Below, in pieces: positions 456 to 8,412 of a stretch of DNA of 64,000 nt. The notes beneath the pieces are model-generated. The model was not told the origin of the DNA. It searched no databases and saw nothing but the letters and a program-made list of their open reading frames with translations. Every line of letters starts with the position of its first letter. The first letter of the stretch is position 1. The position numbers were made by a program, and so were the translations under genes. Origin of the DNA: Rebecca billardiae RCC1528 (lineage: Eukaryota > Protista > Haptophyta); contig OZ251238.1 of NCBI GenBank assembly GCA_965240325.2, forward strand, positions 744,001-808,000, given 5' to 3'.

Positions 456-2800
456 TCAGTCGCACTTGATCGCGCGGTAGATGCGGCGCACGAATGCGAA
501 CGCCGAGAAGAAGCCGATCATGCCGAGCATGGTGAACGCCGCGAACGACATCATCGCCATGTACCCGAAGAAGAAGGAGGTCTGCATGAAGCCAAACATG
601 TTCGATCGCTCAAAGTAGTAGAAGATGGAGTAGGCGAACACAAAGAAGCCGGTCGAGCCTGCGTGCACGGCGCAGCGCCGCATGGCAGCGGGCGCGCGCG
701 TGGTGAGCGCGGCGCCCTCGCAGCGCCCCCACCCCGCCCCGCCGCAGCGCGCGCGCGGCACGTGCTCGGGGCGGTGCGCGGCGCGCACCGCCCGAGAAGA
801 AGGAGCGCCACCACCACCGGTGGTCCTCGATCGCCAGCTGGAAGTAGGTGAGCGCGATTGTGATGAACGAGGTCACGATGATCAGCATCGAGAAGGCGAT
901 GAAGAGCACGCCGTACAGCGTGTACAGCTTGTGCCCCCACACGCTCGCAAAGATGTAGTGCAGCTCGATGTAGATGGCTGAGAAGGGCAGGAAGCCTGCA
1001 GCAGCCAGCCGACAACACGTGCGAGCGCGTGGCGCGCGGGCCACAGGGCGCGTGGGCACCCGCGCCGCGCGCCGCGCGCGCACTGACCGGTCTCCGCGCG
1101 CGCGTGCGCGCGCGGTGTGTGTGCACGCGCGCGCGCGCGCCCACCTGCCATGAAGACCTGGCACGCGGACTGGCGGTACCACGGGATCGGCGGGATCTCG
1201 CGCGGGATCTTGCTCGTGCGGCACGGCGGCTCAAACGCGTTTCGCTGCGCCCAGCTGCGGCCGGCAAGCCCGCCGAGCACGGCGAGAGGGAGCGACACGA
1301 GTGCCCAGAGCAGGATGACGATGACGATCGTGCCGAACGGCAGCGCCGCCGTCGAGTCGTACGCGATGGCCACGGTGTTGAGGAAGCAGAACGTGCAGAA
1401 GAACGGCACGGGGAACAGGCACGCCGCGAGCACCAGATTCCACGCCCACCGCCCGCCTGCGCCCGCGCCCGAGAAATTGCTGTACGCGGCCGCGGAGACG
1501 AAGCCGGCGATGCCCGCCGTCGTGGCGTACAGCACCACCGCCGCCGAGTAGATCGCGCCGCGGTTGCCCGGGTAGAACGTGTTCATCAGCGCGAGGATGA
1601 GCAGGCAGAAGACGAGCGCCAGCAGCTGCCCGCCCGTCCCGAGCAGCGCGCACAGCAGCGAGCCCTGCGGCGGCACCCGGAACACGTCTCCGTGCACCAG
1701 CTTCCAGCCTGCGAAGGCGGCGGGCGGCGTGGCGGGCGGCGTGGCGGGCGCGGGCGGCGCCGCTCGGCACCGCGCGGCCCGCCGTGCGCGCGCCGCGCGC
1801 GCGCCGCCGGTGCGCGGGCGTCGGCGCAGCACCGCGTGTGCGTGCGCACGCGCACCTGTCTCGTCCTCGTCGTCCTCCTCCTCGTCTGCGCGTGTGTACC
1901 GTGTGAAGTCGTTCTTGAGGACTCGCATGAGGATGATCGCGAGGAAGCCGGTGAGCAGGAGCACGAGCACGAACGAGTTGATGATCGAGAGCCAGTGGAT
2001 CTCGAACGACTGCGGCATGAACGAGTACTGCGAGTAGCGCTCCATCCGGCGCTCATACGGCACGTCACTCAACTGCCAGCGCACCGCGTACGTGAACTCG
2101 ACCTGCTGGCCGACGGCGTTGCCTATGTCCTTGCGCTGCAGCGGGTCGGCGGAGACGTTCACGTCGATCACGTGCTCGCCGTTGTACGACAGCGAGAAGT
2201 CGAGGTGCGTGAACAGGTAGTAGCGCGTCGTGTTGTCGTCGTTCAGACCGGGCGCGGCCGAGGTCTCGAGCTCGCCGACGTAGCCCCAGATGGGCAGGTC
2301 GTCGAGCAGGAGCTCGAAGTAGTAGTCGTCGACGATGGCCTGCTTGAACTTGGCCGCCTTCTCGTCGTCGAGCGTCACCTTGCACAGCGGCTGCCACTGC
2401 ATGTCCACGCGGAAGCGGATGTCGTAGAGCGTCTTTGTCGCGCGGTCGCCCTTCAGCACCTCGCCCAGGTCGAGCCACTTCTCCTCGAGCTCCTTCGGGC
2501 GGCAGAACGGGAGCGAGAAGAACTGGTACAGCTCCGACGGGTTCGCGAACGGCCCTACCTGCGCATGACCGGGAGGTGTGCGCAAGCATGCGTGCGCAGC
2601 GCGCTCAGCCATGTGCCGCCGCTGAGGGCGCGCAGGGCGCGCGCGCTCGCGGCCGACACAGGCCGGGGCGCGGCGGCGGCCGCGTTGTGGGGCGCGTGCT
2701 GCCTTGTCCGTGCCTTGTTGGCATACAGCGTGATCGGCTCGCCCTCCTCATATGCGCCCGCGAGCGGGAGGACGAGCGCGACGGTCACAAGCCAGCGCAT
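456..2800 (-). CDS. Transmembrane 9 superfamily (TM9SF/EMP70/nonaspanin) protein, 5 exons
   Basis: Signal peptide [16 protein letters not shown], then YANK|[58 protein letters not shown] and C-terminal IKCD (KxD Golgi-type tail). Introns 2559-2713 (GC-AG), 1709-1855, 996-1144 and 659-788 splice in frame. Confidence 0.95.
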
Positions 2801-3410
2801 CGCCCACAGCTCGCGTTGGGCATACGCTGCTGCACAAGAACGATGGCGGCCAGCGGCACAACAAAGAATTGATGGCGGCGGGAAATTGAAAATGCGCATC
2901 ATTGTAGGGGGGCAGGGCTGCGGGTGGCGCACTGCCTGACCTGGTCGGAAGGCGCGGACGCATTCTATATGTGTCTGCTGCATTCAGAATGATCGGATGA
3001 TAATCCTTTGTTGTGCACGTTAAAACATATATAGAATCTCGCCTGCCTGAGCTGTGTGCGTCTCTTATTCTTAGTAAACTGTAGAGTGAGGAAAAGTTTC
3101 TAAAGTTTATGGGGGTATCCATAGACCCCGTCAGTAATATAGTAGTATCAGCACCATTGCTATACGTACATACGTAGCAGCGGCGACGGCCGCCACAGTG
3201 CGCACACGAATGTGACACTGAAATCCTAGCTGACTTCTGGATGAGGCGGACATGGTGTAGCCTTGCGGACCCACAAGTCGCGTCACGGCGACCTGTCGAG
3301 GACGATGGCATCGCCAGTATTGTCCGTCTCGACTCTCGTTCATCGTTGATTCGCCGATGACGTGGTCGTGCGGCGCCGCGCCGCGGCAGTCTGTGGCCCG
3401 ACGGCGGCCG

Positions 3411-6400
3411 CTACGGCACCCAGAACTTGGTGTTGTTCGCCGTCTTATCCACGGCGAGCTTCTTCCACGCGCCGTTGCACTCGCTGATCACCTCCTTGGC
3501 CTTGGCGGCGTCGTCGGGTGTGTCGGAGACGAGCACGTTCACCGCCTTGCCGTCGGTCGTTTTGTACATCTTGAGCCAGTCGACGAGCGCGGCGAGCACG
3601 CCGGGCTTCTGGGTCTCGAGGTCGGAGATCGAGTTGATCGAGGCGGCGTTCGGGTCGTCGAGCGCGAGCGCGATGATCTTGTGGTCGAGCTCGCCCTGGT
3701 CGATCAGCTTCAGGTTGCCCAGCACCTTCACCGGCACGATCTCGCCCACCTTGCGCGCCTTGTCGCCCAGCTCGACAATGTCGAGCGGGTCGTTGTCGCC
3801 CGCGTTGCCGTCGAACTTGGTCGCCGGGTCCTCCCACGTCTGCGGCAGCAGCCCGTAGTTGAAGAAGGTGAGGCCGTACGTGTACTCGCGCACCTTGCCC
3901 TTCTTCGTGTCGTGCATGATCGGGTTGCCCGGCACCTCCTTCTGCACCTCGAGCTTCGACGTCGTCCCGCGCGGGATCTCCACGATCATGTTGAACGAGT
4001 CGGCACCGTCACCCTGCAGCTTGACGTGGTGCCAGGGCGACACCTTGGGCGCGGCCGACGCGCCCTCGGCGAGCTGCGGCGTGCTCGCGTCGAAGGAGAT
4101 CGAGAAGTGCAGCGTGTTGTACATGCCGTCCGGCTTTGCGTGCGGCGCGAGCGGCGGCACCTCGTGCTGCACCGAGTACTTGACCTGCGAGAGCACGACG
4201 CGGCGGCGGCGCGCGCGAGGTCGGGCGATGGGGTGTGCGGCGCGCAGCGTGAGCGGAGCGCGCGGCGGGCGGGCGCGCGCAGGCTGCCGGCGCGCGCGGC
4301 GCGAGAAGTTGCGACGCGGGCACCAGCACCGCCACCGCCGCTCGCGCCGCCGCGCGTGCGTGCGCGTACCCACTCCTTCGTGTCCTTGTTCTGGTAGTAG
4401 TCGATCATCTTCGCCCAGCCGCCCGGCACCATGAAGCCCGGAGGGATGCACTTCTCCTTGACAAGGTCGGTCGGGATTGTGTCGGGGCACGGGTGCGCGC
4501 CGAGCGCGGCGAGCGTGCGCATCTTGGTGCCCGAGATCGAGATGAAGTCGTCCTTGCGCGAGGAGTCCTTCGGCTTCATCGTGTGGTCCTTCACGTCGTA
4601 GTACACCTGAGGCGGATCGGGGGCGGGCGGGCGGGCGATGCGTCAGCGCACGGGTCCGTGGCAGGCGAGCGCCGGGCGCGGCCGTCACGAGCCGCGAGCG
4701 AGCGCCAAGCGCGCGCACAGCCCAGGTAGGGGAGACGGCAGCCAGCACGGCGAGCGGTGACCGGGCCGTCGAGAGCCGGGCGCTCACGAGCACCCCGCAC
4801 GCACGCGGCCGTGGGCACACGCGCGCTCCTCCCCGACCGCCCGCTGCTCCCATCCCGCCCGTCCCCGTCCGACCGGCCGCGCGCCCGGCCGCGCGCCCAG
4901 CCGCGCGCCCCGCTGTGCGAGCGCTCGCACCTTGTCAAACGCGAGGAACTCCATGTCACCCACGCCCGGCGAGTACGAGAGGACGTAACGGCCGTGGTCC
5001 GGGTGGTACAAGTCGTCGCCCTTGGCCGGGCCCTCCGAGGTCCGCGGCATGCCCGCGGGGTCGCGGCCCACCACGAAGAAGGACGCGCCGCCGATGCGCC
5101 GCGACTTTGCGTGGAACTGGACCTCAGTCGGCCCCGCGTAGATCATGGGCGATGGCCAGATGGCCATCACCGTCGACTCCTCGTCGAGCATGCCCTCCTT
5201 GATCACCGCCTCGTGCTGCTTCACGCGCACGTCGAGCGGCACGTCCGACGCCTTCGTCCACCCGCCGAGCGGCGAGAGCCACAGCACCGGGTTCTGGTAC
5301 CCGCGCTTCTTGAGCTGGCGCTGCGCGTCGCGCATCAGGAAGGCGTGGCCGGCGTGCGTCGGGTTGCGAGTCTGGAAGGCAAAGACCGTGTCGGCGTTCT
5401 TCCGCTTGAACTCGGCGCGCAGCTCGTTGACCGTCAAGCGGAACTGGTCGAGGCCGTCGTCGTACTGCGCGAGGGCGGCACGCGCGGCACGCACGGGCGG
5501 CGCGGGGAGGGCGTGAGCGCGCGGCGCGCAACGCGGGGGCCGGCGCGGGCGGCGCGGCGCGGCGCCGGCGCCGGCGCGGCGGCGCGGCGCGCTGCGAGCC
5601 GCGCACGCGCGCGCGCTCCGGCGCGCGGTGCGTGCGTGCGCACCTTGATCTTGCCAAGCAGCTCGACCTCGCCGCCAACGAGCCAGTTGCCCGCCGTGCG
5701 GATCAGTGTGATGTACGGGTGGTCCGGGTCCTCCACGCCGAAGCAGCGCGCGATGATCTCCTCCTTGCGGTGCTCGTACACCTCGGGGTTGCGCATGATG
5801 GCGAGCGGCTTGCCCGCGGCGTTGTACAGCGTGATCGCCTTCGCCTTCTCGATCTGCCGCTTGGTGAAGTCGGTGACTGGGAGGACGATGGGCACGGGCA
5901 TCGAGACGCGCATCGGCGGGTACGTCTCCGTGTGCAGCCAGTCCGTCTTCCGCTCGAGGTACCCGGCCATCCCGGTGAAGTTGTGCGGGTCCACTACCCA
6001 CGAGTTGAAGTGCAGCGCCTGCATCAACGGGCCCTCGCGCATGAAGCCGCGCAGCGGCGAGGCCCAGCCCTCGCCGATGACCTGCAGCCAGTTGACGTCG
6101 ACGTCGCGCAGCGGCACGCCCGGCAGCGTCTTCGCCTCCTCGAGCAGCGCGGGCAGGTCGTCGCGCTTCGCCACCAGGTCGACGACCGCGCCGCCGTCGG
6201 GCGGCGCGAGCGCGCCGTCCTCGCCCGCCTCGGCGCGCAGCAGCCCGCGCTTCGTCAGCTCCTTGATGATGAAGCTGACGGACTCCTGCGGCGTCATCTG
6301 GTGGGTGGGGATGGTGATCTCCGGGTTGAGCGGCGTCTCGTACGGCGCGTCGATCCCCGTGAACCCCTTGATCTCGCCCGCCGCCGCCTTCTTGTACAGG

Positions 6401-7380
6401 CCCTTCGGGTCGCGCGCCTTGACGACGTCGAGCGGCACGTCCAGGTACGTCTCGAGGAAGGGGAGGCCCTTGTCGCGGTGGAGCATGCGCGCCTTGTTCC
6501 GCGCGTCGCGGTACGGCGAGATCAGCGTCACCATCGTGATCACGCCCGCGTCGGCGAACAGCGCCGCCGTCTCCGACGCGCGCCGCACGGACTCGGAGCG
6601 GTCGGCGGGCGAAAAGCCGAGGTCTCGCGTGAGGCCCGTGCGCAGGTTGTCGCCGTCGATGCGGTAGACCACCTTGCCGTGGCGGAAGGTGAGCTCCCGC
6701 TCGAGCAGCTCGGTGATCGTCGTCTTCCCCGAGCCCGACAGCCCCGTGAACCACAGCGTCGCGCCCTGCTGCCCGATGCGCGCGAAGCGCTGCGAGCGGT
6801 CGGCGCGGCAGTCCTTGCCAGGCGCGCACTCCATGATGTTGCCCGCGCCGTTGCGCAGCATCTTCTCGCGGTACTCGCCGGCGACCTTGGCCGAGTCGGG
6901 TGGCGGGCAGCCCTCCCGCATCGAATCCGGGAACTCGATCTGCGGGCACTCGGGCTTCGGGCAGATGGGCGGCGGCACGGTCGGGCACGGCGCCTGCTGC
7001 GGGCAGACCGGCTTCGGGCACACCGGCGTGGGGTGGGGCTGCGACTTGAGCACCTCGCTCACTTGGCTCTTCACGTCGATGCACAGGTCAGCCGCCGTTG
7101 GGCACGGCCTGGGCGCCTCGTACGTCGCCTGCTGGTAGCCGATCAGCATGAGCGACGCGGCGAGCATGCCGCCGACAAACGCGAGGGGCGTCTTCATCCC
7201 GCCTGACCGAGGCCTTCTGACGTCAAAATCGTCGTCGTCGTCGAACGAGGATGAGTAACGGCCCTGCTCGGCGTCGGAAACAGCGTGCGGCGCCCGGGCG
7301 CGAGCCACGCGCTCAGCGCGGCGCACGGCGAGAGAGATTGGGCGTTAGCGCTGAAGCCGCCGCGGTGATGCACGCACCAT
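3411..7380 (-). CDS. APS kinase - ATP sulfurylase - soluble inorganic pyrophosphatase triple fusion (PAPS synthase-PPase) with N-terminal hydrophobic anchor
   Basis: APK: [42 protein letters not shown]: [52 protein letters not shown]. PPase: [34 protein letters not shown]. Introns 5465-5643, 4607-4930 and 4185-4369 are all phase 0 and join the domains in frame. Start is either ATG at 7380 plus intron 7264-7377, or ATG at 7197. Confidence 0.93.
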
Positions 7381-7563
7381 CCGAGCTGCCCGAGTCGCCC
7401 CACACCACGAAGCGGCGCCCGGACTCCATGGGCGTCATCTTCCAGTTAGACGTGCCGGCCGTTGAGCGTCCGGTCGGAAGCGTAACGCTTACGACGATGG
7501 GCATTTTCGATTTTAATTTCACGCCGCTAGAAATAGCCCGGTGCGGCTCCGATCGGGACGACG

Positions 7564-8412
7564 ATGTGGACTCGCCCTGCGCGAGCGCGCCCGTCCAAGC
7601 TGCTTGTGGCGGCCGTGCTCGCGGGCGCTGCGGGGACCGGATCGCCGCCACGGGGCACACCGCGGCTTCCACGCCGCGCACTCGTGGGCGCCCTGACCAC
7701 CAGCGCCGCCTCTGCGCTCCTCACGCCCGCGCGCGCCAGCGCGGACACGGTGCCCTTCGCCGAGCCCGGCAGCCGGGTGGCCACGCCGCGCGGCGCGGCG
7801 GCGCTCCTGCGCGAGCGCGCGAAGACGGGGGTCACGCGCACGGGATCGGTCCCCACCGAGGACGTCGTCATCGCGCCGGGCCGCCTGCGCGAGGAGCTCC
7901 GCGGCGTGGACGACCCGAGCACAATCGTCGAGCTCGCCTTCTCCTACCCAAGGCAGTGGAGCCTCGCGACCGGGCCGAACATCGACGTGCGCGACCTGCG
8001 CACGTCGGACGCGGCGTTCGTGCTCGCCACGCCGCTCCCAGCGGGCAAGCAGCTCGCCGACCTGCCGTCTTCCTTCTTCATCGACGTGCTTTTCAGCCCG
8101 GAGGGGAAATTCGGGCAGTACGGCCAGGTGGATGACAGGCGTGTCGTCTCCTCCCGGCTCGTCGAGGGCGCCGGGGGCGTGCCCAGCCGCGTGCTCGACA
8201 TCAAGTTCGCCGCGCTCTCATTCAACTACAACCTCGTCGAGCGGCGCCTGCTGCTCCGCGCCACGGCCGTGGGCGGCGGCGTGTACATGCTCGCGGCGTC
8301 GACGCTCAACACGCGCTACAGCAAGATGAGCGACACCATGCGCGACATCTGCGACTCGTTCGACGTGCACGTCGTGCGTGCTTCCCGCGCCGCGCCCGCG
8401 GACGGGGCGTGA
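7564..8412 (+). CDS. PsbP-domain thylakoid lumen protein
   Basis: Hydrophobic leader, then twin-arginine RRALVGALTTSAASALLTPARASA lumen signal. PsbP-like core AFSYPRQW...GKFGQYG...RATAVGGGVYMLAAS...ICDSFDV. Confidence 0.75.
   Translation: MWTRPARARPSKLLVAAVLAGAAGTGSPPRGTPRLPRRALVGALTTSAASALLTPARASADTVPFAEPGSRVATPRGAAALLRERAKTGVTRTGSVPTEDVVIAPGRLREELRGVDDPSTIVELAFSYPRQWSLATGPNIDVRDLRTSDAAFVLATPLPAGKQLADLPSSFFIDVLFSPEGKFGQYGQVDDRRVVSSRLVEGAGGVPSRVLDIKFAALSFNYNLVERRLLLRATAVGGGVYMLAASTLNTRYSKMSDTMRDICDSFDVHVVRASRAAPADGA

Follow-up and report, generated by a model that had tools for sequence, protein, structure and literature searches.

A membrane-anchored triple-fusion PAPS synthase of the haptophyte Rebecca billardiae that may face the secretory lumen

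In the textbook scheme, sulfation in the secretory pathway uses cytosolic PAPS, which is carried into the Golgi by SLC35B-type transporters. A gene of the haptophyte Rebecca billardiae RCC1528 raises the question of whether PAPS may be made within the secretory lumen itself. The gene lies on the minus strand at positions 3411-7380 of the window, meaning the whole 64,000-nucleotide stretch of contig OZ251238.1 that was analysed, and its five exons encode a 1,055-aa product in which a charged tail, one hydrophobic helix and a stem rich in Cys and Pro precede APS kinase, ATP sulfurylase and a family I pyrophosphatase, in that order. Enzymes of this family were known before; what is new is the reading of the anchor and of the compartment that it implies. 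The protein is best explained, at a probability of roughly 0.6, as a single-pass type II protein whose whole catalytic part lies in a secretory or endomembrane lumen, that of the Golgi/TGN or of a post-Golgi compartment being the most plausible.

On the minus strand, the start ATG occupies 7380-7378 and the stop TAG 3413-3411, and the spliced coding sequence of 3,168 nt is in frame throughout. Every intron is of the GT..AG type, with donors GTGCG or GTACG, acceptors CGCAG or CTCAG, and a GC content of 81-90%. The parts of the gene are as follows.

7378..7380, minus strand: coding part of exon 1, the ATG alone, followed by the donor GTGCGT; transcripts of relatives begin M-G-R/K-Y, and the 5' UTR lies further upstream
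7264..7377, minus strand: intron 1, 114 nt, GTGCGT...CTAAC...CAG, the CTAAC being branch-like
5644..7263, minus strand: exon 2
5465..5643, minus strand: intron 2, 179 nt, 90% GC
4931..5464, minus strand: exon 3, ATP sulfurylase catalytic core (ATP-sulfurylase, PF01747, 1.4e-45)
4607..4930, minus strand: intron 3, 324 nt, 81% GC
4370..4606, minus strand: exon 4, C-terminal part of ATP sulfurylase (C-terminal piece of PF01747, positions 156-204; matches 4maf, 2qjf and 1x6v)
4185..4369, minus strand: intron 4, 185 nt, 83% GC
3411..4184, minus strand: exon 5, a linker, the family I pyrophosphatase (3462-3989; Pyrophosphatase, PF00719, 1.3e-36) and the TAG (3411-3413)

The evidence for splicing comes from transcript contigs of relatives (72-90% identical), not of RCC1528 itself, and with these the junctions at introns 2, 3 and 4 are colinear and gap-free at the protein level. 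At the 5' end, the spliced transcript L001, from a relative at 76% identity, begins ATG-GGA-CGT-TAC with an in-frame TGA just upstream, the transcript contig of a 90%-identical relative (L003) retains the equivalent of intron 1 (ATG, then GTGCGT...CAG, then GGCCGC), and the genomic contig L004, from a third relative, has an exon 2 that begins, behind CAG, with GGTCGCTAC. These contigs support a first exon of a single codon, in agreement with the start drawn in the initial annotation. Transcripts starting downstream of the helix would have undone that annotation; those of the relatives start before the helix and include the tail codons. Over the 22 tail codons compared with L003 there are 9 synonymous differences and 2 conservative ones, a pattern indicating that the tail is under purifying selection. 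Intron 1 itself is 64% identical to its L003 counterpart, with 26 gapped positions, and the flanking codons differ mostly synonymously. Two other kinds of start were rejected: an unspliced start further 5', as the continuous ORF upstream of Met24 has no in-frame ATG, and the upstream ATGs at 7438, 7429 and 7504, all of which are out of frame.

The domains and regions of the protein ahead of the sulfurylase core map to the following positions.

7192..7263, minus strand: predicted cytosolic tail, aa 2-25, carrying a Tyr close to the N-terminus, five Asp followed by Phe, and a basic RRPR..K adjoining the helix
7135..7191, minus strand: single hydrophobic segment, the predicted signal anchor, aa 26-44 (Kyte-Doolittle 1.59 over 19 aa, 1.92 over 17 aa)
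6769..7134, minus strand: stem, aa 45-166, made of two short helices, a Cys/Pro-rich extended stretch of CPxCP type and a conserved helix leading into the kinase
6310..6768, minus strand: APS kinase domain (APS_kinase, PF01583, 4.7e-58; P-loop and ISPY; pLDDT > 90)
5656..6204, minus strand: PUA-like N-terminal domain of ATP sulfurylase (PUA_2, PF14306, 1e-35), with a family-specific insert visible against human PAPSS1

The initial annotation's claim that a single polypeptide unites APS kinase, ATP sulfurylase and family I pyrophosphatase holds for the in-frame 1,055-aa model, by Pfam and by a motif scan in which the catalytic motifs of all three enzymes are intact. The APS kinase, which is recognised by a P-loop of the form GxSGxGK[ST], by DGD, by (I/L)SP(Y/F) and by a profile score above cut-off, has GLSGSGKT at aa 175, DGDNLR at aa 204, ISPY at aa 249 and a score of 196 bits against a cut-off of 21.1. 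In ATP sulfurylases of the eukaryotic or PAPSS type, a PUA-like domain precedes the catalytic domain, which bears QxRNPxHxxH and GRD; here the two profiles, PF14306 and PF01747, score 123 and 156 bits, and the motifs are of the QxRNPxHxxH type at aa 572, VGRDPAG (aa 673, exon 3) and SGTKMR (aa 744, exon 4). The pyrophosphatase scores 126 bits, carries DNDPLDI at aa 928 in agreement with the PROSITE-type signature D-[SGDN]-D-[PE]-[LIVMF]-D-[LIVMGAC], and matches human PPA1 (6c45) at 1.1e-49 and yeast IPP1 at about 1e-46, while the human PAPSS1 structure 1x6v matches the query at 1.5e-87. The three domains stand in order on one in-frame chain, colinear with the single-ORF transcripts of relatives, and the same Pfam set recurs in more than 70 full-length homologs. 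A feature search of the ESM Atlas returned only generic APS kinase and PAPSS clusters.

In front of these domains, the tail, helix and Cys/Pro stem read from the spliced translation exactly as they had been quoted earlier. In the AlphaFold2 model the tail is disordered (pLDDT < 50), the anchor is a single helix of 24 residues whose pLDDT reaches 92, and the Cys/Pro part of the stem is coil at pLDDT 54-61. The anchor is the sole segment of such hydrophobicity outside the kinase core; it is only moderately hydrophobic and Gly-rich, and the helices of homologs span Kyte-Doolittle values of 1.6-2.9. The 122-residue stem contains 10 Cys, 22 Pro and 14 D/E, and matched no Pfam family at E up to 10. 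A 25-aa tail, a helix of 19-24 residues and a 122-aa stem followed by the catalytic part together make the layout of a type II Golgi enzyme. Furthermore, the stem resembles the immunoglobulin-type hinge (CPPCP) and the disulfide-linked stems of Golgi transferases, in that C-P-x-C-P is repeated within an extended Pro-rich stalk leading from the membrane to globular domains; there is, however, no sequence homology to the hinge, and the long stem occurs only in haptophyte members.

The anchor is present in 79 of the 120 best homologs, and most of the anchor-less entries among these 120 begin inside or just behind the helix and look like N-truncated gene models. Such truncation is frequent in public gene models of the family and is probably the reason that the anchor was overlooked. 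The anchor occurs in full-length triple fusions of haptophytes as well as ochrophytes. Of five deep-branching representatives, four (P0130, P0139, P0140 and P0145) have both helix and pyrophosphatase, and the fifth, P0154, is fused to pyrophosphatase and lacks the helix; metazoan-type double fusions (P0146, P0147 and P0187) have neither. These comparisons indicate that the anchor is family-wide in pyrophosphatase-fused enzymes. Of the two features whose conservation the initial annotation had singled out, the transmembrane helix thus held across the family, whereas the long Cys/Pro stem did not, the ochrophyte homologs having a short stem with 3 Cys.

A lumen-facing enzyme would be expected to keep its tail in the cytosol and to bear the marks of an oxidising, glycosylating compartment. 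K+R are more numerous in the 15 residues before the helix than behind it in 57 of the 67 distinct anchored homologs, with equality in 4 and the reverse in 6 (medians of 3 and 1), and the RCC1528 protein has its basic cluster before the helix and no K or R in the 7 residues behind the helix. By the positive-inside rule it is the tail that is placed in the cytosol, and not, as would have refuted the earlier proposal, the catalytic domains. In the same 67 homologs the tail is charged and conserved, with a median length of 31 aa (range 16-164); 50 of them have YxxΦ in the tail, and 48 have a dibasic motif no more than 8 residues from the helix. Three further features concern the catalytic side.

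6808..6828, minus strand: invariant Cys pair 1, C147 and C153, motif E-C-x5-11-C, immediately ahead of the kinase fold (72/72)
4448..4489, minus strand: invariant Cys pair 2, C759 and C772, flanking an insert of 12-17 residues (72/72)
5974..5982, minus strand: N-x-T sequon N429-F-T in the family-specific insert (N in 70/72, T/S in 69/72)

Pair 1 is found in all 72 full-length haptophyte and ochrophyte homologs and is absent from deep triple fusions and metazoan-type enzymes; pair 2 is found in every pyrophosphatase-fused representative and is absent from human PAPSS1/2, soybean ATPS and a metazoan-type double fusion. The sequon is conserved as N-x-T/S in 96%, its middle residue being free (I, L, F, V, A or H). 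Two closely spaced Cys pairs, which cytosolic and plastid homologs of solved structure lack, and a conserved sequon are traits expected of a luminal protein and favour that placement, as does the CPxCP-rich stem, predicted to run as extended coil from a confidently modelled helix to the kinase fold. Cys content is less telling: the catalytic part has a median of 4 Cys in triple fusions against 5-10 in only three double fusions, which is no clear difference, and the luminal part has an odd number in 39 of 60 homologs, so that complete pairing is without support. Reading an odd stem Cys as the sign of an interchain bond was set aside as special pleading.

The same helix could hold an enzyme that faces the cytosol, N-out and C-in like cytochrome P450 or an outer-membrane signal anchor, with PAPS made on the cytosolic side of an organelle such as the ER or Golgi, possibly next to a PAPS transporter. 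A lone N-terminal helix does not by itself set orientation, the ATP, Mg2+ and low Ca2+ of the cytosol suit all three activities, and the odd Cys counts give no support to complete disulfide pairing. Reviews also take the enzyme to be cytosolic (PMC4220642), a placement based on the absence of a plastid leader and not on experiment. It is nevertheless unlikely: besides the charge bias, the long conserved tail has YxxΦ and dibasic motifs that are sensible only if cytosolic, which argues against an N-out topology; the invariant Cys pairs and the sequon sit in family-specific inserts; and a fused pyrophosphatase is unneeded where soluble pyrophosphatase is abundant. An N-in/C-out, lumen-facing topology with a secretory or Golgi address is thus the probable one on these sequence features.

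A further alternative is a three-enzyme protein that is soluble in the lumen or secreted, its hydrophobic segment acting as a cleaved signal peptide; this would follow if translation began at Met24 (ATG 7197-7195) or if signal peptidase cut C-terminal to the helix. Were intron 1 kept, as it is in the L003 contig, Met24 would be the first in-frame ATG and would open a classic n-h-c layout; the database gene call P0001 starts there, and many ochrophyte homologs have A-R-A directly behind the helix. However, the sequence upstream of Met24 is maintained as protein and is encoded by spliced transcripts of relatives, there would be no point in conserving some 30 aa of tail, sorting motifs included, if the peptide were removed co-translationally, and the -3 residue here would be Gln, a poor cleavage site by the -3/-1 rule, so that a cleaved signal peptide is quite improbable. 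A plastid or periplastid leader, of which the helix would be the signal-peptide half, is less probable again. Haptophyte and ochrophyte plastids lie inside the ER, and their import begins with ER entry. In that case the complex plastid would be the site of PAPS or APS synthesis, in line with the plastid targeting that Patron et al. 2008 (PMC2275785) read from a 'signal peptide' on the Thalassiosira pseudonana fusion; that call, however, rested on a raw contig, according to Prioretti et al. 2014 (PMC4220642), and plastid-less Phytophthora also has the enzyme fused to pyrophosphatase (PMC2275785), a comparison that concerns the fusion and not the helix. A bipartite presequence opens at the very N-terminus with a signal peptide whose n-region is short, and continues with a hydroxylated, basic transit region that has few acidic residues and an aromatic at the cleavage site. 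By composition and homolog comparison neither half is found in the RCC1528 protein: the hydrophobic segment starts only at aa 26, behind a tail that is long in homologs too; the region that follows is acidic and Cys/Pro-rich; and the homolog alignment has no conserved F/W/Y behind an AxA-type cleavage site. A PsbP-like neighbour in the same window, in contrast, has a typical leader, with no D/E and no Cys in its first 60 aa.

If the catalytic part does face the lumen, ATP sulfurylase would convert ATP and sulfate to APS and PPi, the fused pyrophosphatase would remove PPi in a compartment presumed to be without a soluble pyrophosphatase of its own, and APS kinase would convert APS to PAPS, which would therefore be made beside the luminal sulfotransferases that modify secreted glycans. 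The cytosolic tail would hold sorting information in its helix-adjacent dibasic cluster and its Tyr/acidic or YxxΦ motifs, and the hinge-like stem probably forms interchain disulfides that would hold a dimer on a stalk. We infer the disulfides, the glycosylation of N429 and that ATP and sulfate reach the lumen. For such an arrangement, sulfate and ATP would have to enter the lumen, and ADP, Pi and PAP to leave it. Ca2+, which is abundant in the ER and Golgi, inhibits family I pyrophosphatases; this inhibition, the moderate Gly-rich helix, the odd Cys counts and the helix-less P0154 count against a lumen. In its widest form, the proposal would have haptophytes and ochrophytes make PAPS in the secretory pathway instead of importing it, by a self-contained, disulfide-stabilised and N-glycosylated type II enzyme to which pyrophosphatase is fused since the lumen has none, and which its tail steers to the site where scales, coccolith-associated polysaccharide, fucans or other sulfated glycans are assembled; it might extend to all pyrophosphatase-fusion lineages. 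For this version the chances seem about even.

APS kinase-ATP sulfurylase-pyrophosphatase triple fusions are said to have been described by Bradley et al. in 2009. [quoted passage not shown] The literature searched on triple fusions makes no mention of a conserved tail, helix, stem, Cys pairs or sequon, and that on these algae has no occurrence of the PAPS transporter term. As the initial annotation had supposed, luminal PAPS synthesis is proposed in no paper found in the literature searched, where no PAPS-making enzyme of tail-anchor-stem layout was found either. PAPSS1/2 (1x6v, 2qjf and 7fh3) likewise join APS kinase and then ATP sulfurylase in one chain with shared catalytic motifs, but are cytosolic or nuclear and lack the membrane helix, the pyrophosphatase, the Cys-bounded insert in the C-terminal part of the sulfurylase and the sequon-bearing insert. 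The earlier statement that characterised PAPS synthases are cytosolic, nuclear or plastidial had left out Entamoeba histolytica, in which PAPS is made in the mitosome (PMC4621310). There too a membrane-bound compartment contains ATP sulfurylase, APS kinase and its own inorganic pyrophosphatase, but as three separate soluble proteins of a mitochondrion-related organelle from which a carrier exports PAPS to the cytosol (PMC4621310), whereas the RCC1528 enzyme is one anchored chain, placed by our reading in the secretory system, whose PAPS is presumably used on the spot.

Plant luminal UDP-xylose synthases are built of a short tail in the cytosol, a signal anchor and a stem. They carry out donor synthesis in the Golgi lumen (PMC6018967), and luminal nucleotide handling is represented by yeast GDPase, which is described with a layout of the same kind (PMC2119650). 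Both are donor-nucleotide enzymes of the Golgi lumen, as is proposed here, although their folds and chemistry are unrelated. Luminal use of ATP is known from FAM20C (PMC12643058).

Haptophytes, diatoms and other ochrophytes are major marine primary producers that release much sulfated polysaccharide, and if the family works in the lumen they would use a compartmentation different from the textbook one; the long-noted, unexplained pyrophosphatase fusion would also gain a simple reason. A single-chain PAPS generator active in an oxidising compartment, if that is what the enzyme is, would be useful for enzymatic or in-cell sulfation. Orthologs occur in the transformable Phaeodactylum, Thalassiosira and Nannochloropsis, which makes the claim directly testable. 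The nearest named matches are from E. huxleyi and Chrysochromulina, and the proteins of E. huxleyi, Nannochloropsis and Ochromonas share 52-56% identity with it across the query region.

[quoted passage not shown] What is new is a reading of the sequences in which the family as a whole would carry a type II membrane anchor with a cytosolic sorting tail, together with features of luminal proteins and the compartment that these imply. No proposal of a membrane-anchored or luminal PAPS synthase was found in the full-text literature, in a coverage that leaves out most subscription journals.

The gene is a single minus-strand unit at 3411-7380, in surrounding DNA that is rich in GC (65-80%). Its exons, put together by script from a reading of the sequence, are:

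7380-7378, minus strand, exon 1 (the ATG alone)
7263-5644, minus strand, exon 2
5464-4931, minus strand, exon 3
4606-4370, minus strand, exon 4
4184-3411, minus strand, exon 5

All four introns (114, 179, 324 and 185 nt) are bounded by GT and AG, with GTGCG or GTACG donors and CGCAG or CTCAG acceptors. The GC content of the three larger ones (5465-5643, 4607-4930 and 4185-4369) is 81-90%, above that of the exons; they are GCG/CGC-rich and of low complexity, and several of their frames yield long Ala/Arg/Pro "ORFs" that clutter six-frame lists. Splicing gives a CDS of 3,168 nt that encodes 1,055 aa in frame, with one stop codon, at the end. The product consists of APS_kinase (4.7e-58), the PUA-like ATP sulfurylase domain (1e-35), ATP-sulfurylase (split between exon 3, 1.4e-45, and exon 4, which holds the C-terminal part) and Pyrophosphatase (1.3e-36), in that order. 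The motifs of the APS kinase (P-loop, DGD, ISPY), the ATP sulfurylase (QxRNPxHxxH, GRD, SGTKMR) and the pyrophosphatase (DNDPLDI) are intact. The nearest solved structure for the kinase-sulfurylase part is human PAPSS1 (1.5e-87), along with the ATP sulfurylase domains of soybean and human, and those for the pyrophosphatase are the human and yeast family I enzymes (1e-49 to 1e-46). Thus, the in-frame model, the Pfam order and the intact motifs bear out the spliced three-enzyme fusion of the initial annotation. Ahead of the kinase are the charged tail, hydrophobic helix and Cys/Pro stem just as quoted there: a 25-aa tail that contains a Tyr, five Asp in a row and RRPR..K, the only hydrophobic segment of this region (aa 26-44), and a stem of 122 aa with 10 Cys and 22 Pro. 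For residues 1-168 there is no Pfam match, not even at E = 10.

Further support for the gene model was drawn from transcripts of relatives. The closest homologs are single-ORF, transcript-sized contigs of 3.3-3.5 kb that code for all four Pfam domains, and the three internal junctions are conserved without gaps in global alignments to the relatives' proteins (72-90% identity). A first exon of one codon is unusual, and is supported by comparison with several related sequences. The spliced transcript of a 76%-identical relative (L001) reads ...TGA ATG GGA CGT TAC..., L002 starts with ATG GGC AAG TAC, and M-G-R-Y is the start of further transcript-derived members. In L003, a transcript contig from a relative with 90% identity, only intron 1 of the four is kept, with the same ATG/GTGCGT donor, CTAAC box and CAG/GGCCGC acceptor, and in L004, a genomic contig of a third relative, exon 2 begins CAG/GGTCGCTAC. 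Between the window and L003, 11 of 22 tail codons differ, nine synonymously and two conservatively (D/E, V/A), and intron 1 shows 64% identity and gaps at 26 positions, its two versions differing in length by a number not divisible by three; it follows that the N-terminal tail codes for protein and is under purifying selection. The retention of intron 1 in L003 (positions 1-111) may reflect slow or regulated splicing of an intron just after the start codon, or the assembly of pre-mRNA reads. Upstream of the start at 7380, three ATGs on the minus strand (7504, 7438 and 7429, within 7381-7563) share one frame, out of frame with that start, and would open upstream ORFs should they belong to the 5' UTR. 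In L003 just 8 nt precede the ATG; in L001 a short upstream ORF runs up to the start codon and ends there.

The database gene call for the locus (P0001, 587 aa) starts at Met24 and ends in intron 2, and thus lacks the tail and the downstream domains. Automatic gene calls have split or truncated other members of the family as well (L004 2102-5584, P0027-P0034 and others), for example into a 615-aa N-terminal piece and a separate 253-aa pyrophosphatase ORF, or with starts at an internal Met, and such faulty calls probably hid the anchor from earlier surveys.

A protein search returned >6,500 homologs, and an anchor, defined as a hydrophobic 17-mer (Kyte-Doolittle ≥1.5) ahead of the kinase P-loop, is found in 79 of the 120 best matches among them. 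The named family members are, among others, from Emiliania huxleyi, Chrysochromulina, Ochromonas or Ochromonadaceae, and Nannochloropsis. The remaining 41 of the 120 have no helix; most visibly start inside or just behind it, and so look like truncated models. Deeper branches were reached through a word-index-free search of 50%-identity representatives. Four of the pyrophosphatase-fused representatives recovered there (P0130, P0139, P0140 and P0145) have an N-terminal helix, a fifth (P0154) has the pyrophosphatase with no visible helix and may be truncated, and both helix and pyrophosphatase are missing from the double fusions of metazoan type (P0146, P0147 and P0187). Among the sampled sequences, membrane anchor and pyrophosphatase fusion co-occur. 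The APS kinase domain of P0145 and P0154 is degenerate, with the P-loop replaced and a Pfam score of only 37-42 bits, and is reminiscent of the kinase-like regulatory domain in fungal ATP sulfurylase; both proteins also have long low-complexity C-terminal tails. The anchor and the Cys stem, joined in one layout by the initial annotation, part ways across the homologs: the anchor is family-wide, and the long Cys/Pro stem is specific to haptophytes, whose stems have 10-18 Cys and many CP dipeptides against a short stem with 3 Cys in ochrophyte members.

Orientation was read from K+R counts in the 15 residues before and after the helix of 67 distinct full-length anchored homologs. These residues are more numerous before the helix in 57 cases, equal in 4 and fewer in 6 (medians 3 and 1), and by the established positive-inside rule the tail is predicted to be cytosolic. 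The tail is conserved, with a median of 31 aa; a Tyr near its N-terminus forms YxxΦ in 50/67 homologs (YAPL, YSPL, YERV, YQHV and others), and a dibasic motif lies ≤8 residues from the helix in 48/67. In type II proteins, both motifs classically serve as cytosolic signals for sorting and for export from the ER. The clade of the studied gene has a Tyr followed by an acidic run and Phe rather than YxxΦ. PMC3014094 deals with what basic residues do in Golgi enzymes.

Only four Cys, in two close pairs, are invariant across 72 full-length haptophyte and ochrophyte members. One pair (C147/C153, E-C-x5-11-C) lies directly ahead of the kinase, and the other (C759/C772) flanks an insert of 12-17 residues close to the C-terminal end of the sulfurylase. 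All pyrophosphatase-fused representatives have this insert, and it is absent from human PAPSS1 and PAPSS2, soybean plastid ATP sulfurylase and one metazoan-type representative. A second insert, missing from the human enzyme, holds the sequon D-x-x-N-x-[TS]-G at aa 429, with N in 70/72 members, T/S in 69/72 and a free middle residue. An AlphaFold2 model of the 318 residues after Met1, built on a 36-sequence alignment, begins with a disordered tail and a 24-residue helix predicted with confidence; two short helices follow, then a long Cys/Pro stretch in extended form (low to intermediate confidence), a conserved helix and the kinase fold (pLDDT >90), in a predicted layout of tail, anchor, stalk and globule. 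Because charge bias, tail motifs, Cys pairs, sequon and layout agree, the catalytic part probably faces the lumen (probability about 0.6), and the luminal type II enzyme of the initial annotation stands as the best current explanation; a "signal peptide" had earlier been seen on one member and read differently. Points against it are the many Gly and only moderate hydrophobicity of the helix in the studied protein, the Ca2+ sensitivity of family I pyrophosphatases, and the one deep member with no visible helix; Cys-count parity and Cys density lend it no support.

An anchored enzyme that faces the cytosol is unlikely: the bias in charge and the motifs of the tail speak against it, as do the Cys pairs and the sequon that are specific to the family. 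Cleavage of a signal peptide to give a soluble luminal enzyme, a variant of the lumen-facing reading, is quite improbable in view of the conserved coding tail. Patron et al. 2008 (PMC2275785) suggested a bipartite plastid leader for T. pseudonana, which Prioretti et al. 2014 (PMC4220642) doubted; such a leader is very unlikely, as it fits neither the long charged tail ahead of the hydrophobic segment nor the acidic, Cys/Pro-rich region behind it. A contrast is offered by the neighbour:

7564-8412, plus strand, PsbP-like gene (PF01789, 2.7e-05)

Its product starts with a leader that would suit a plastid/thylakoid-lumen protein: the n-region is short, a hydrophobic stretch, a twin-Arg and A-S-A are present, and the first 60 residues contain 0 D/E and 0 Cys.

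The cytosol and plastids contain plenty of soluble pyrophosphatase. The sulfurylase reaction is highly unfavourable; hydrolysis of PPi and phosphorylation of APS pull it forward (PMC4220642; PMC3734648). In a secretory compartment, where a luminal pyrophosphatase is presumed absent, the enzyme would have to supply its own; the fusion would then have a reason, and so would its occurrence alongside the anchor. Such a scheme assumes import of sulfate and ATP, and disposal of ADP, Pi and PAP from the lumen. The Entamoeba mitosome (PMC4621310) is a parallel: there, ATP sulfurylase and APS kinase share a compartment with an inorganic pyrophosphatase of their own. Precedents exist for donor synthesis inside the Golgi (luminal UDP-xylose synthases, PMC6018967), luminal use of ATP (FAM20C, PMC12643058) and luminal nucleotide handling (yeast GDPase, PMC2119650). 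The odds are even that luminal PAPS synthesis takes the place of import in haptophyte/ochrophyte lineages.

The PsbP-like gene and the PAPS synthase gene are transcribed divergently, and the ATG of the latter is only ~180 bp away. On the other side of the PAPS synthase gene lies a downstream gene on the same strand:

882-2612, minus strand, EMP70/TM9SF (nonaspanin) gene (PF02990, 9.8e-53 and 1.2e-32 on two ORF pieces)

The very GC-rich, Ala/Arg/Pro-coding middle of this gene looks like an intron read through. Between it and the PAPS synthase stop (3411), the spacer at 2850-3300 has a GC fraction of 0.47-0.49, against 0.65-0.80 elsewhere, and is probably a 3' UTR/terminator and promoter region.
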